Assembly (NCBI GenBank): GCA_964199315.1
Contig: OZ116700.1
Coordinates: forward strand, 13,454,001-13,518,000
Source: Orbicella franksi
Taxonomy: Eukaryota
Length of the DNA: 64,000 nt
Direction: 5' to 3'
The translations under genes and the position numbers were made by a program. How positions within the stretch are numbered: the first letter of the stretch is position 1; each line of letters begins with the position of its first letter. Shown here piece after piece: positions 3,832 through 44,100 of the stretch. The notes below the pieces were generated by a model. The model ran no database searches. It was not told the DNA's origin and worked only from the letters and a program-made list of their open reading frames with translations.

Positions 3832-6800
3832 GTAAGTTTTTTTCAGCGTTTCACATGTTTAGTATAATTTCCATGGGTGAATATAAGAATCTGGAATTCT
3901 GATTGGTCGAAAAACTCTGCCTATCGCCGCCATGATCACCTCACGAGAGTTCCAGGCGCGTTTGCTAAGTCTAAACACATTTGCTATGCTGGCAAGTAAA
4001 CACAGTGAGCTGGCATTTAAATGAATTTACCATTCATTCTGAAGACATCACTTTCAAGCATTTGGAATACAGGAAAAAGAGTTACAACAGCCTAGGACTA
4101 AAATCCTAGGGCTAAAAATCTTTGCAATAAATGCTTTGCCTTGACCGTGGGTGTTTCTTTGTATTTGCAGCGTTCCTGATATTCAGCTCTCGAAATTATG
4201 CTTCATGCAAAACGTTAATAGGTTTTCATATCTTTGCAGAATCTGGCAGATCTCGAGGCGTATCGTGCGGCGTTGAAGGAAGTCAACATGTACATCTCAC
4301 AAGTAGAAAACATCGTCTCCACAAAACTAGAAACGACAGGTCGTTTTGTCGATCCCCAAGAGGAATACAAGACTTCAAAGGTACGAAACGGCAAAAACGT
4401 GTTTTTGTTGACATCCAACACTAAATGTTAGTCGAGGAGCAATGCTGTCACGGAGCATGACACGCTTGCATATGGAAGGCGATAATTGAGATAGGCATGA
4501 GATATTATGAAGTATGCGATGTTTTTGTTTTGGAATTAGAAACACCCCAAATGTTCCTGTAAAGGTTTTCTCAGCTGAAAGGTTAACGCCTGGGACCTAT
4601 AGGGATAGAAATACACATTAAAGAACAATACAGTAATCGGGTTAGAAAAACTACCCCTACCCCTCTCCTCACCCTTGTGGCTTCCTTCACAGGATTGGTG
4701 AACGTGCTTGTTGATTGAGCAGGTTTGACAACACCGTTAACAGTCGAACAGCCTTCCAGGTCAAACCTCGCTTTTTGGTCACTTCAATCAAACATAATCT
4801 CCGTATTCCCCCATGCAGTCTCATCGTTTTACTTCAAAGAATTAATTTATGACTGATCAATGATCCTAACTATGTGTACCTTACATTACTACTATGTCTT
4901 CAGTTTTTCAAGCTTCCATTTCATTTGCCATCTCGGCGTTAAAACTGAGCACGCATGCGCGTGGAAGGTTTATAAAGAAGTAGCTCATAACACTAGTATA
5001 TTATTCATTTCTAATTTCTTTTTGTCATCTCAGTCTCTCCAGGAGGACATCTCGAATCACCGTCAGGATGTAGAAGATGTGATCGACAAAGGCGAAGCAC
5101 TCGTGAAAAGCGAAAAGACTGACGAGATCCACTGTACAGAAATCAAAAACGAAGTACTGCTCCTTCACGAACGATGGGAAAAACTGGAAATACTCTCCCA
5201 GAGATTACACAAGCGGTAAGTGGGCTAAACGAGGAATATCTTGCACAACAGTCGAACCCAGCCTACGTACACCTGTTAATACCCACAGCTCATTTAGGAC
5301 AGTGCTTTATCCCTACGTTATGAAAATGTCTTGAAAATTCATTTGCTTAATTGTGTACTCCAAGTACTCAATAGTACTTACGACCACATTTCAAAAAAAA
5401 CTCAGCACGGAATTTTTAATGCAGCAGAAACATCGTGAGGCTGGTGATAAAACTTTGGTCTTTGTTATTCACAGGTGTCGTGGAGCTGTTGCGTCTCCAA
5501 GGGAACAGCAGATTGACATTTACATTACGTGGATTATGCAGATGAGACGTGAGATAGCAGCTCGAGGACAGAGTACGAACCCTGTTGCCATCAAAGACGA
5601 GATCAAGCAACACGAGGTTAGCGTTTTAGTTCGGTTTGTGATCTTGTTTTTGACTAGGTAGATGCACAGAGTATCATTATTCTTTCAAAATCTTAAAATG
5701 ATGTATTTTTCCTTAGGATGTGTTTTTGTTGCGCTTTTTTCAGGGCGCCATATCACGGATTGAACAAAAGATGCCGGAAATAGATCGAGTCATCAATGAA
5801 GTTGACCAGCTATGCCAAGAGCCATACATGGACGAAGAAGACCGTGTAGCGCTGCTTGGAAAGTTAAAAGACTTGACCACCAACTGGGACGAGATGCGGA
5901 ATGAGGCACTACAAAAGGAAACAGAGTAAGAAATAAAAATAAGATAAGAGGCATGAGAGCCTAACTACTTAAAAAGCAACGAGGTTACACACAGTTTGAG
6001 TGATGAAGGACGACGAAAGGAGGAAGAGAAGGAGGGACGGGGGGATGGAAGAACGGCCGGGTAGGACAAGGGGTGACGAAAAGCGTGGCAGAATGGAAAA
6101 GCTTGGGGTATTCCTATGCACAAGTTGTTCCATGTACTTATAATGTCGCTGCCCAGTTCCTTGAACATTAACAGTTCAATTAATAAGTATTCCTTATACC
6201 TGTAACACACAACGTACATAAATGATTGAAATACAAAAAGCCATAAATGAACATAGGATTTTGGTTTTTGGTTTGCCTTGCCTCATAGTCACTGCTTTTC
6301 ATCCGGGACAAAGGAAGGTGACAACCAAACAAATAAAAACAAGCGAACAAACAAACAAAAACAAAAACAAAATCAAACAAACCAATAATTCGTTCGAGAT
6401 TTCTGCGGTCACGGCTTTATTGAAATTTTTTAAAACCGTCTTTTTGTTCAAAATGATAGAATGCAAACTTGGACGACATAGCTTCAGCCACAGCCTGATC
6501 GATGGAGAGAGGAATACCACACGAAGTATAGTTTGTAACTGAAACTTGAAACAGAGACAATTAATTTTGGTATTTAAATTTAAAAAAAAGAAACGAAAAA
6601 AACCTAAAATGCCTCAATAAACAGCACAATCACTTAATGAGCTGCCATCTTCCTTTGCAGTCTCCGGGACAAGCTGTCACAATCTTCCCCAACTGAAGAG
6701 AGCGTTGAAACAGAAGTGCTTGTCCAAATAGAGCAGAACGATGTACAGTCCGCACCTTCAGAGTTCAGCACATTGGAAATACAAGTAAGCGATTATACAT

Positions 6801-41100: not shown

Positions 41101-44100
41101 GGAACTGAAGAACGAAATCTCCTCATTCGACCCAACGTTCAAAAAAGCAATTGGAATAAGTGATAGGCTACTGACCGAGCGGTTGGTGGACCCCGAGAGA
41201 GCCGAGAGTTATGAAACGGAAATAAGCACTCTAGAAAAGAGATGGAAAAATCTACAACTGAAAACCATGGACAATGGAGCAAAGTGAGTATAAATGATGA
41301 TGATTTTAAAGAAATTTTAGGAGCCACTTTTACAGACGCTGCAACTTCTAAAATGTAACCTAGTTACAGTGGAACCTTCATTACGGAAACACTCTCATCA
41401 CAAGGAGACTTTTCCCCTTTTCCCCTTCGGGGGTGTTCCCTTAATGGAGGTTCCACTGTAAAATAGAGGTTTGATTAGGGTGTAATCGATAGCTGAGTTT
41501 TCCTTAACATTTCAACTGTCAGCCGAGGACTAAAGCGTTTGAGAACTGATGGCTGAGATCTGAAGCTGGAATCTTAACTGATAATTGAAATTCTAGCACC
41601 CCAATGAGACCCTCATCATTGACCCGGCTTTCGTCCCTATTTCATAGTGATCGTTGTTAGGTTAATATCGGTAGTTCTTGATAAGTCAAAGGCACCAATA
41701 CTAACTAACCCTGTTCTGCTTATTTAGATTATCTGGTGTCCTTGGGAGATATATCACAACACGATTAGATGACGCAGAGATAATCTTGACACAAGCAGAG
41801 TCCAGTATAAGCAGAGATGATGCAGATTATTTGGACCTCGAAGCAGCCAAGAAAGCATTAGATGCGTTTAGGGTAAGTTAACGTTTTGTTAAAAATACAG
41901 CAACTGATGGGACTGCGGGGGGGGGGGGGGGGCAACATTTAGAGAATGGAATGAACTTTCTGAAAAAGCCACACAGAGCCAGGAGTTTCTCTTCTAGTGC
42001 CCCTATTGGTAAAAGGGCAAACCTTTTAGAATTGACTATTGGCACATTCGCCCATCCAGTGTCAGATTTAAACAAGCGTCCTCTTTGTCTTCTTCTGCTA
42101 TTATGAACACAGATTGGTTGCCAATGCTTTACTCTTGCGTCAAATTTTATCAAATCGCTGAAAAAAAGAAAATTAATGTTAGCGCAATTTTCAGTCACGA
42201 AAAACGGACTATTCCGAGAACTTTTACACCAAAAATCATTCAAAATCATAACATCATATGTGCGCATGTAAGCTTTATAAGGAGTGCTTTCAAAACTTAA
42301 CTGCTAAATAACAGCACTCTTACATTACGATCACAGTATGATATCTTTTAGTTCCAGCGTCTTACTGTGCTGTTTTTTGGGTTTTTCAGGTCAAAAAGAC
42401 AGAAATTAACGAGTCGCAAAAGAAAGTTGACGAGATTCTCACCGAGTCCCAGGCCATTGTCAAGGAGAAATTCTTCAAGGAACATGAGCGGCATCATTTT
42501 CAGGGTAGAATTGACATGATTGACAAGAGGAACAAAGGACTCGAGGAGAAGGCTGACAAAGAGGAAAGAAGGTACAGTATGACTTGATATAGGGGCTTGA
42601 GGGCCGTTTACAAGGACAAGCATGCTAGCTATACTCAGCTACTGGAGAGAGCCAAGTTGCCAACTCTAACGAACAGGCGTTTACAAGACATCTGTATTCT
42701 CATGTATAAAGTTAAACATAGACTATGTCCTAATAGCATCTGTAACATTTTTAACGAGCATATTTCTGCATACAACCTGAGACAATCAGATTTTTCTACT
42801 CCTAGATACAACACTGTTACTTATGGGAAGCACTCTTTGCGTTATGTAGGACCCAAATTATGGGGCAAACTGTCTATGGCTGACAGATCAGCCAAGACAC
42901 TGCAGGCTTTTACAAACTATATTCGCAAAAGGGATATAACTCGCTTAATGGACACCGGCTGTAAGGGCTGCATCCTATGCTGCACATAATGCCCTTCAAG
43001 TCATTTATTTTTTTATTGTATTAATATTAGTATTAGTATAGTTTTTTAGCAGTGTCCCCTAATTAGTATGGTGTTTTTATTCCCAGGCTATAAGGTTTTT
43101 GACACTTTAATAAAGTTCTCATTCACACTCACATTTACAAGATTTGTTACTATAAACTAAATTGTCAATCGCCATTTAGTGTCTCTGCTTTGAGGGACGA
43201 GGGACGGACCACGACTGAGATTTCAGACTGCATTCTTCAATGACTTGGCTATGGAGGCGGGATGTGTGTATGTCTGCTATGGCAATATGTTTCTGGACAG
43301 ACTTACTATGTGAAATGTTTTGACAACTCCCTGTAGCTTGATATGTAAGCTGTCGACTTGACGACTGCGGGGTTTGTGTTAAAGGACTAGGAAACTACTG
43401 ACAAAGACAGTTGTTTCAGTTTCTCGTTTAGTTGCTTTAGTAATTTGCTGAATGTTCCTGTTGTTGTTTTCGTCTCGTCAGAATGCTTGATACCTACATT
43501 TTGCTACTTAAACAACACTTGCAAAGGATGAACGTTTGGCTCAAAATGGCAGAGTCCCGGGTTAAGCAAGAAGGTGAGATTGGTCCAGGTTATGATGACG
43601 TTAAGAAACAACTGGAAGATCATCAGGTAGGTTTAAACCCTATCCCTGTTTGGGGCAAAGGAAAAAATTTACACTCGTACCCTATGCAGGGAAACGCTCT
43701 CTATTGTATCGCGCTGTTTAGGACAAAGAATTGGATCGAATTATAGGATACTGATAACGATAGAATCAATTTCTTGTCTCAAATTATCTTATGTTGTGTA
43801 ATGACCTGCTAGACATCAGTCGGCTATCGTCTCCGAGCTGAAATTGCTGGGAATTGTATAAACCTCATTTGATATCAGCAATGGTGCAACCGTACTCTGT
43901 TCATATATTTATAAATCCGGGTCAAAATCCATGCCCTGTCGGGCGGCAGTTCCCCTATATACCATCTAAAGGAACCACCTCCGGTAAGAACGTTTTGCGG
44001 CTTATTTTCTGTAGGAGATTTGAAGTAAGTGAAGAGATCATACCCGGACCTATTTAAACGATTTTTTTTTTACAATTTCAGGTCTTTCAAGAAGAACTTA

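Follow-up and report, generated by a model that had tools for sequence, protein, structure and literature searches.

A dystrophin-derived gene of the stony coral Orbicella franksi with a rod probably lengthened by tandem duplication of a two-exon cassette

Exon structure of the array

We analyzed a 64,000-nt window of the stony coral Orbicella franksi (assembly GCA_964199315.1, contig OZ116700.1, positions 13,454,001 to 13,518,000 of the forward strand); all coordinates below count from its first letter. The plus strand carries, between 5034 and 43626, a long array of exons of two alternating types inside a dystrophin-derived gene. The 28 A-type exons are all in phase 0-2: 26 are exactly 182 nt long, one has 185 nt (38851-39035) and one 116 nt (33584-33699). 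They alternate with B-type exons in phase 2-0. An earlier note on this DNA had described the A exons, and we found the 27 long ones where it had put them, open and bordered by AG and GT; the bounds that it gave for the array, 5034 and 43626, turned out to be the exact first base of the first A exon (A1) and the exact last base of the final phase 2-0 exon.

An A exon stops two bases into a codon, while the B exon that follows opens with the third base and closes at a codon boundary. The 27 long A exons, from 5034-5215 to 42390-42571, each have an open frame 0, an AG acceptor and a GT donor, and their mutual alignment needs just one indel of one codon. As a chance control we counted open segments of a given length between AG and GT within 5034-43626. 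At 182 nt there were 35 such segments on the plus strand and 6 on the minus strand, compared to 7-11 and 4-7, respectively, at 176, 179, 185 and 188 nt. Therefore, the excess at exactly 182 nt is not due to chance.

The B exons vary in length. The first fourteen measure, in order, 142, 166, 175, 178, 184, 181, 175, 181, 175, 169 (or 175), 175, 175, 175 and 178 nt, and the other fourteen 175, 166, 175, 175, split (700+197+88), 175, 139, 166, 172, 175, 148, 145, 145 and 145 nt. The mode is 175 nt, as had been reported before (11-12 of 28), with the rest at 139-184 nt. We distinguished two kinds of B exon: those of 142-148 nt, the canonical dystrophin length, stand at both ends of the array, while those of 166-184 nt, mostly 175 nt, occupy the middle and carry about 10 additional residues at the N-terminal end. 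The 175-nt exon, which the earlier note had taken as the partner in the cassette, is thus the commonest B exon but a derived subtype. Introns across the gene model range from 79 to 2,003 nt. The boundaries of B exons outside the stretch covered by RNA (see below) are predictions from splice-site scores and homology.

The cassettes of the array, all on the plus strand (+), are as follows.

5034-5616 (+), cassette 1: A1 5034-5215 (182 nt, phase 0-2); B1 5475-5616 (142 nt, phase 2-0, predicted)
5744-7782 (+), cassette 2: A2 5744-5925 (182 nt); B2 7617-7782 (166 nt, predicted), its sequence kept in the related contig L002
7974-8755 (+), cassette 3: A3 7974-8155 (182 nt); B3 8581-8755 (175 nt)
8939-9642 (+), cassette 4: A4 8939-9120 (182 nt); B4 9465-9642 (178 nt)
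10135-10757 (+), cassette 5: A5 10135-10316 (182 nt); B5 10574-10757 (184 nt)
11395-11874 (+), cassette 6: A6 11395-11576 (182 nt); B6 11694-11874 (181 nt)
12263-13254 (+), cassette 7: A7 12263-12444 (182 nt); B7 13080-13254 (175 nt)
13907-14601 (+), cassette 8: A8 13907-14088 (182 nt); B8 14421-14601 (181 nt)
15099-15905 (+), cassette 9: A9 15099-15280 (182 nt); B9 15731-15905 (175 nt)
16360-17226 (+), cassette 10: A10 16360-16541 (182 nt); B10 with two possible donors, 17052-17220 (169 nt) or 17052-17226 (175 nt)
18123-18679 (+), cassette 11: A11 18123-18304 (182 nt); B11 18505-18679 (175 nt)
19110-19795 (+), cassette 12: A12 19110-19291 (182 nt); B12 19621-19795 (175 nt)
20208-20936 (+), cassette 13: A13 20208-20389 (182 nt); B13 20762-20936 (175 nt)
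21356-22243 (+), cassette 14: A14 21356-21537 (182 nt); B14 22066-22243 (178 nt)
22677-23324 (+), cassette 15: A15 22677-22858 (182 nt, as in its orthologue in contig L006); B15 23150-23324 (175 nt)
23560-24883 (+), cassette 16: A16 23560-23741 (182 nt); B16 24718-24883 (166 nt)
25205-25848 (+), cassette 17: A17 25205-25386 (182 nt, as in its L006 orthologue); B17 25674-25848 (175 nt)
26044-27831 (+), cassette 18: A18 26044-26225 (182 nt); B18 27657-27831 (175 nt)
27995-30802 (+), cassette 19: A19 27995-28176 (182 nt); B-type helix-A segment in three exons, 28600-29299, 30002-30198 and 30715-30802
31018-31779 (+), cassette 20: A20 31018-31199 (182 nt); B20 31605-31779 (175 nt); all four boundaries confirmed by RNA
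32383-33174 (+), cassette 21: A21 32383-32564 (182 nt); B21 33036-33174 (139 nt); boundaries confirmed by RNA
33584-34071 (+), short cassette: A-type exon 33584-33699 (116 nt, phase 0-2); B exon 33906-34071 (166 nt); confirmed by RNA; Nematostella counterparts of 98 and 148 nt
34405-36761 (+), cassette 22: A22 34405-34586 (182 nt), acceptor at 34405 confirmed by RNA; B22 36590-36761 (172 nt); 182 and 172 nt in the Nematostella paralogue
37397-38633 (+), cassette 23: A23 37397-37578 (182 nt); B23 38459-38633 (175 nt); 182 and 187 nt in the Nematostella paralogue
38851-39501 (+), cassette 24: A24 38851-39035 (185 nt); B24 39354-39501 (148 nt, predicted); 185 and 148 nt in the Nematostella paralogue
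39637-40803 (+), cassette 25: A25 39637-39818 (182 nt); B25 40659-40803 (145 nt, predicted); 182 and 145 nt in the Nematostella paralogue
41102-41872 (+), cassette 26: A26 41102-41283 (182 nt); B26 41728-41872 (145 nt, predicted); 182 and 178 nt in the Nematostella paralogue
42390-43626 (+), cassette 27: A27 42390-42571 (182 nt); B27 43482-43626 (145 nt)

The split segment of cassette 19 consists of exons of 700 nt (phase 2-0), 197 nt (0-2) and 88 nt (2-0), so that the 2-0/0-2/2-0 rhythm is kept. Exon 28600-29299 starts like a B exon and continues into about 230 residues of Glu, Arg and Lys (hereafter ER/K). Read whole, the segment has a B-like start, the ER/K residues with a linker, and a B-like end; the expansion sits at the very spot where the middle B exons carry their additional residues.

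A candidate exon at 6661-6784 (124 nt, phase 2-0, open between AG and GT, acidic, Ser-rich and with a good score) was left out of the model, as it fits the frame only together with a partner exon. It lies in the 1.7-kb intron between A2 and B2 and could be an alternative or additional exon.

RNA support

Two stranded polyA RNA runs were mapped onto positions 29400-35399. Within these 6 kb every junction was confirmed by stranded reads, with GT..AG joints. The joints fix A20, B20, A21, B21, the 116-nt exon, the B exon after it and the acceptor of A22. The B exon at 33906-34071 has 166 nt by RNA, not 175. Exons 30002-30198 and 30715-30802 of cassette 19 were confirmed by the junctions 30198>30715 and 30802>31018 and by a loose end corresponding to the 3' terminus of the ER/K exon.

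Along correctly spliced consecutive exons from 30002 to 34586, the sense depth of polyA reads drops about 60-fold (from ~1,100 to ~17), and the junction reads fall from 807 to 20. The A-rich ER/K exon lies just upstream and may have been captured by oligo-dT; premature 3' ends or isoforms could also account for the drop.

In about half of the reads that span the junction of A21 and B21, the three opening bases of B21 (33036-33038) were replaced by AAA, probably an allelic difference in the first codon of the exon. The intronic segments 29600-29999 and 31800-32200 reached an unstranded depth of up to ~27,000 in a third RNA run and metatranscriptome contigs, with many variant letters and loose ends. 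The pattern suggests that these segments are copies of an interspersed repeat that is both abundant and transcribed.

Flanking exons and the predicted protein

The exons on both sides of the array, all on the plus strand, were predicted as follows.

581-4380 (+), upstream flank: nine predicted exons, 581-642, 825-920, 1489-1566, 1771-1863, 2502-2599, 3158-3241, 3352-3467, 3719-3831 and 4240-4380
44082-46563 (+), downstream flank, predicted:
44082-44249 (+): helices B-C of repeat R2
~44633-44776 (+): helix A of repeat R3
45484-45666 (+): helices B-C of R3 (183 nt)
45746-45892 (+): next helix A
46315-46563 (+): last helices, Cys-Cys/basic tail and stop

The upstream exons encode two calponin-homology (CH) domains, which form an actin-binding domain (ABD), and helix A of R1. 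In tblastn comparisons they were 55-70% identical per exon to the dystrophins of Antedon (crinoid), Patella (limpet), Nematostella, Dendronephthya (octocoral), chicken and amphioxus, while the Pfam signal of the CH domain was weak. The splice-consistent upstream chain measures 62/96/78/93/98/84/116/113/141 nt, and its N-terminal exons of 62/96/78/93/98/84/116 nt compare with 62/96/78/93/86/81/116 nt, in the same phases, in Nematostella dystrophin.

Downstream, the tblastn matches were colinear with residues 449-619 of Antedon dystrophin and 588-744 of Nematostella dystrophin, and the 183-nt exon 45484-45666 is in phase 0-0 like exon 16 of the latter. The array is thus seated exactly between R1 helix A and R2 helices B-C, with colinearity to dystrophin on both sides.

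The complete model of 72 exons is a single open reading frame (ORF) of 4,106 codons. The product would begin with the ABD and R1 helix A, continue with 28 alternations of A-type and B-type exons, R2 B-C, R3 and one further repeat, and end in the short Cys-Cys/basic tail. The in-frame stop is at 46563, and the predicted product, whose 3' end is itself a prediction, contains no WW, EF-hand or ZZ region.

Two large hits of the protein search, P0002 and P0001, were considered as versions of the coral gene; they do not match the window.

Similarity of the A and B exons to dystrophin repeats

We compared the exons with dystrophin repeats by profile searches, Smith-Waterman alignments and searches of the PDB; most of the other dystrophin repeats fail to align to the exon profiles. 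When the 27 long A exons were combined into one profile, R1 helices B-C gave the highest-scoring domain in 11 of 12 canonical dystrophins, with 26-37 bits compared to 8-23 bits for the next repeat. Single A exons had their best Smith-Waterman match in R1 B-C in 124 of 324 exon-by-species tests, where ~4% would be expected if the repeats were equal. For A1 and for A12 this was the case in all 12 dystrophins, and A13 was 40% identical to residues 338-389 of Antedon dystrophin. The top PDB hit of the A profile was 3UUN, the R1 repeat of dystrophin (2e-8), with alpha-spectrin close to it (1u4q, 1e-7), and its sole match in the full-length dystrophin chain 9c3c_D was at residues 388-442. Conversely, when the A exons were scored by repeat profiles, the median was 13.8 bits with R1 B-C and 1.4 bits with R2 B-C.

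The B profile had its best PDB hit at residues 454-494 of 9c3c_D. R2 helix A was scored above R1 or R3 helix A by 19 of 27 B exons, with large margins for the well-conserved ones; for example, B27, presumed to be the original R2 helix-A exon, had 35 bits with the R2 helix-A profile and 21 with that of R1. The weakly conserved B exons were uninformative on this affinity. These preferences support the proposal that the added repeats are chimeras, each joining an R2-type helix A to helices B-C of R1 type.

A spectrin repeat is a bundle of three helices, about 105-120 residues long, in which helices A and C carry conserved Trp residues. Tryptophan is present in the consensus of the B exons and in that of the A exons. 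Single A exons hit positions 46-100 of the spectrin repeat family PF00435, below the cut-off. We used AlphaFold with a one-repeat alignment to model a single hybrid repeat of the Nematostella relative described below; the model had a predicted local distance difference test score (pLDDT) of 84.5 and three helices at 2-39, 47-88 and 93-117. Its best Foldseek hits were the crystal structures of utrophin and dystrophin R1, with template modeling (TM) scores of 0.67-0.70.

Comparison with canonical dystrophin exons

The canonical dystrophin of Nematostella (XP_032238201, locus L001, 3,886 aa) was mapped exactly to its locus, where 77 of 77 exons reproduced the translation. Its exon 12 has 182 nt in phase 0-2 and encodes residues 420-479 of R1 B-C, the stretch matched by the A exons of the window. 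Exon 13 has 145 nt in phase 2-0, the length of B25-B27. Human DMD exon 11 is c.1150-1331 (182 nt, phase 0-2) and exon 12 is c.1332-1482 (151 nt, phase 2-0) in Human Genome Variation Society (HGVS) coordinates (PMC7327972, PMC3607557), as the earlier note had stated. Among dystrophin exons of this phase, the 182-nt length is peculiar to the R1 exon. The R1/R2 pair is singled out by the 182-nt length, the position of the array, the 145-nt B exons at the 3' end and the preference of the B exons for R2 helix A, taken together. The colinear flanks and the 182-nt/145-nt pair of Nematostella agree with the view that the cassette was amplified about 27 times between R1 and R2.

The coral gene and canonical dystrophin (human DMD, Nematostella XP_032238201) share the tandem CH domains of the ABD with its intron positions, the 182-nt phase 0-2 exon of R1 B-C followed by a phase 2-0 R2 helix-A exon of 145-151 nt, the colinear R2-R3 segment and the 183-nt phase 0-0 exon. 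The coral gene differs in having 27 additional copies of the exon pair, the ER/K helix, the short Cys-Cys/basic tail and a strongly diverged ABD, which is only ~52% identical to cnidarian dystrophins, and it is without repeats R5-R24 and without the WW/EF-hand/ZZ region that binds dystroglycan. With no dystroglycan-binding end, it was classed as a paralogue: it is dystrophin-derived and not dystrophin.

Age of the array and its relatives

The copies in the array are 10-47% identical to each other at the protein level, and neighboring copies are barely more alike than distant ones (24% vs 18%). The matrices of A-A and B-B identities correlate with r = 0.29 when A(i) is paired with B(i) and with r = 0.34 when B(i) is paired with A(i+1) (permutation p < 0.001). 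We concluded that both exons were copied together; the duplicated unit may equally have been A+B or B+A.

Other assemblies contained ~130 short single-exon ORFs, each with its best match to one particular A exon at up to 98% identity. The long relatives that we compared were contig L006 (8.1 kb) and two Nematostella loci, as most Logan contigs are shorter than 2 kb. Contig L002 has an orthologue of A3 with 182 nt and 88% identity, along with a B exon of 172 nt. Contig L004, from a more distant source, places an A3-like exon of 182 nt, a B5-like exon of 175 nt and an A6-like exon of 182 nt next to each other at 879-1783, and therefore has two cassettes fewer there than the window. Contig L006, from a distant relative, carries cassettes 13-22 in the order of the window, with very small introns; four of its A exons have 182 nt and one 185 nt. 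Its ER/K stretch is much shorter than in the window, the intron corresponding to A21-B21 is lost at 6278-6312, where the exons read through in frame, and a long Asp/Asn-rich low-complexity insert lies at 1241-1640 ahead of the counterpart of B15.

Besides its canonical dystrophin, Nematostella has a paralogue of 917 aa (XP_048577274/5, P0321/P0110; L005:10001-30719 on OW051998.1), located ~9.4 Mb away on the same chromosome and automatically named 'MACF1 isoforms 6/7' or 'dystrophin isoform X2'. To our knowledge, no paper has described it. The exons of P0321 have 182/172/182/187/185/148/182/145/182 nt in the phases of the window, which reproduces the idiosyncratic lengths 172, 185, 148 and 145, and they include one-to-one counterparts of cassettes 22-26. 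P0321 scored 322 bits against residues 3003-3659 of the window product compared to 67 bits against Nematostella's own dystrophin. Pfam found Spectrin alone in it (95 bits), and it ends in a Cys-Cys/basic tail as the window product does. The matching exon lengths, the terminal repeat and the tail make this paralogue an orthologue of the 3' part of the coral gene. It differs in having only 917 residues, a different first exon, and no ABD, cassettes 1-20 or R2/R3 segment.

Given these one-to-one counterparts, at least this part of the array predates the split between stony corals and sea anemones. All the copies are old, and each has been conserved in its own right; the serial duplication that the earlier note described, with its high divergence, is not a recent one. 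The A length of 182 nt was found in 26 of 28 copies in the window and in every clean orthologue examined, as would be expected if helices B-C and their loop were constrained in length, with the N-terminal end of the helix-A exon free to vary.

A second member of the family appears on the minus strand in convergent orientation (60781-60659 and 60496-60245). One of its exons is 49% identical to the helix-A exon 45746-45892, and the Cys-Cys/basic tail at the end of its last exon (NNCCGAFLKKR...) resembles that of the array's gene. Two further segments, 63471-63292 and 63971-63867, gave weaker A- and B-type hits. ORFs on the plus strand at 56150-59000 resemble a tyrosine-recombinase (Crypton-like) element.

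Interpretation and alternative explanations

We think it likely that what is encoded here is the expanded central rod of a dystrophin paralogue, expressed in the stony coral, in which a cassette equivalent to DMD exons 11 and 12 was duplicated in tandem. A two-exon unit, made of the R1 B-C exon and the R2 helix-A exon, would have been duplicated inside the gene about 27 times, presumably by unequal recombination between introns. With the same phase at both its ends, the unit can be gained or lost without disturbing the reading frame. Every added three-helix repeat would be a hybrid, its helix A encoded by a B exon and its helices B-C by the A exon that follows. The expansion would be old, with each copy then kept as its own orthologue, and the helix-A exon would have tolerated changes at its N-terminal end, such as the 10-residue extension of the 175-nt subtype and the insertion of an ER/K single helix in one copy. 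The product may serve as a long actin-linked spacer of ~30 repeats and an ER/K helix, with a possible lipid or membrane anchor.

Several observations weigh against this interpretation. A B-C profile of nematode alpha-spectrin also ranked R1 B-C first in 10 of 12 dystrophins, which makes R1 B-C the stretch of the dystrophin rod nearest to the spectrin consensus, and the A exons had a median of 15.8 bits with the alpha-spectrin B-C profile compared to 13.8 bits with that of R1 B-C. Both the choice and the alignment of the alpha-spectrin segments relied on the A-exon model, a bias in their favor. Likeness in sequence alone is no proof of descent from R1. The claim that the 182-nt exons are closest to R1 B-C therefore holds among dystrophin repeats, but not against a generic alpha-spectrin profile. 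Nor is the 0-2/2-0 phasing peculiar to the exon 11+12 pair: it recurs in Nematostella dystrophin at the exon pairs 14+15 (167+163 nt), 33+34 (167+145), 47+48 (176+151) and 55+56 (155+178), and human exons 44-46 share it by their HGVS coordinates. The ABD stands on a long branch in a polytomy, in a tree with a poor nesprin outgroup. RNA covers ~6 kb of the array; the N-terminal exons, the 3' end and most B boundaries were predicted. Among 1.8 billion representative proteins, a profile search found no full-length annotated protein of the coral gene; its hits were ORF fragments of single exons, a few true dystrophins and repeat proteins of unrelated kinds.

The shared phasing opens the way for a cassette derived from another dystrophin pair, either one of the four in Nematostella or human exons ~43-46 or 54-57, as these too encode helices B-C and then helix A. 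This origin is largely refuted and very improbable, however, because the A-type exons of those Nematostella pairs have 155-176 nt and never 182, the A profile reaches at most 13 bits on their B-C segments against 33 on R1, the A exons reach a median of only 1.4 bits with the R2 B-C profile, and the array is seated precisely at the R1/R2 boundary. We consider it improbable, if somewhat less so, that a generic spectrin-type repeat (alpha/beta-spectrin, alpha-actinin or spectraplakin) was the source of the repeats, or the form on which they converged, the dystrophin-like flanks then being a fusion partner. The A profile scores alpha-spectrin nearly as well as dystrophin R1 in the PDB, and generic profiles score the A exons as high as the R1 profile does. 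Apart from the bias of those control profiles, this explanation has to face an exon length and phase identical to those of the dystrophin R1 exon, the specific preference of the B exons for dystrophin R2 helix A, and the edge copies A1 and B27, which are among the most dystrophin-like, as duplication in place predicts. Nesprin-derived profiles gave no matches.

The gene could also be the ordinary dystrophin orthologue of the coral, with its WW-EF-ZZ end beyond the modeled stop. The 3' end does lie outside the stretch covered by RNA, and NCBI named the short Nematostella relative a dystrophin isoform. Yet Nematostella holds both a canonical dystrophin and the short relative on one chromosome, the latter with the same tail and with Spectrin alone in Pfam. 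The ABD of the window is a diverged one on its long branch, and the in-frame stop is followed downstream by a related gene that ends on the opposite strand. We give this possibility hardly any weight. Least of all can the array go back to a tandem duplication of recent date or to an assembly error in which near-identical copies were stacked: the regular exon lengths are all that speaks for it, and it is refuted by the low identity between copies, by introns ranging from 79 to 2,003 nt, by the separate orthologue of each copy in other assemblies and by RNA junctions that are copy-specific.

Returning to the expanded rod of a dystrophin paralogue, a wider proposal may be put forward tentatively, although we think it rather unlikely to be right. 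Hexacorals would have a family of dystrophin-derived proteins unable to bind dystroglycan, in which ~27 R2A/R1BC hybrids (R2 helix A with R1 helices B-C), an ER/K spring and a tail resembling a lipid anchor make up a tunable spacer of ~200 nm between actin and membrane. Its length would vary by whole cassettes between lineages, and perhaps between isoforms by skipping, and the hybrids would have been under selection for hundreds of millions of years.

Comparison with known systems

A 2023 review stated that invertebrate genomes contain no dystrophin paralogue (PMC10293626). The coral gene and its Nematostella relative contradict this statement: hexacorals do have a dystrophin paralogue, and it is without the dystroglycan-binding end that defines the known function of the family. 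Our literature search found no paper describing this dystrophin-derived family.

The amplification of exon cassettes in a repeat protein is an already known kind of event. The super-repeats of nebulin, the PEVK and Ig exons of titin, the spectrin superfamily and the collagens all have phase-symmetric exon units that were duplicated in tandem, by which a rod was lengthened in frame. The coral array differs from these cases in two respects. Its unit straddles the boundary between repeats, so that each new fold hybridizes two parental repeats, and the length of one exon is fixed in 26 of 28 copies and across hexacoral lineages. It is a clean example of modular rod growth, in which a phase-symmetric pair was repeated about 27 times, one exon length was held to the nucleotide and the resulting folds are hybrid.

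In-frame DMD deletions, as in Becker dystrophy, and micro-dystrophins likewise create hybrids, in which an exon boundary joins a helix A and helices B-C that come from different repeats. Those hybrids are pathological or engineered single junctions, whereas the R2A/R1BC hybrids of the coral would be natural and kept under selection, about 27 times over. Natural selected hybrids provide testable sequences on the stability of such junctions, with a practical value that is indirect. If the wider proposal on hexacorals is true, the coral hybrids would be a natural library of stable junctions for the design of shortened dystrophins.

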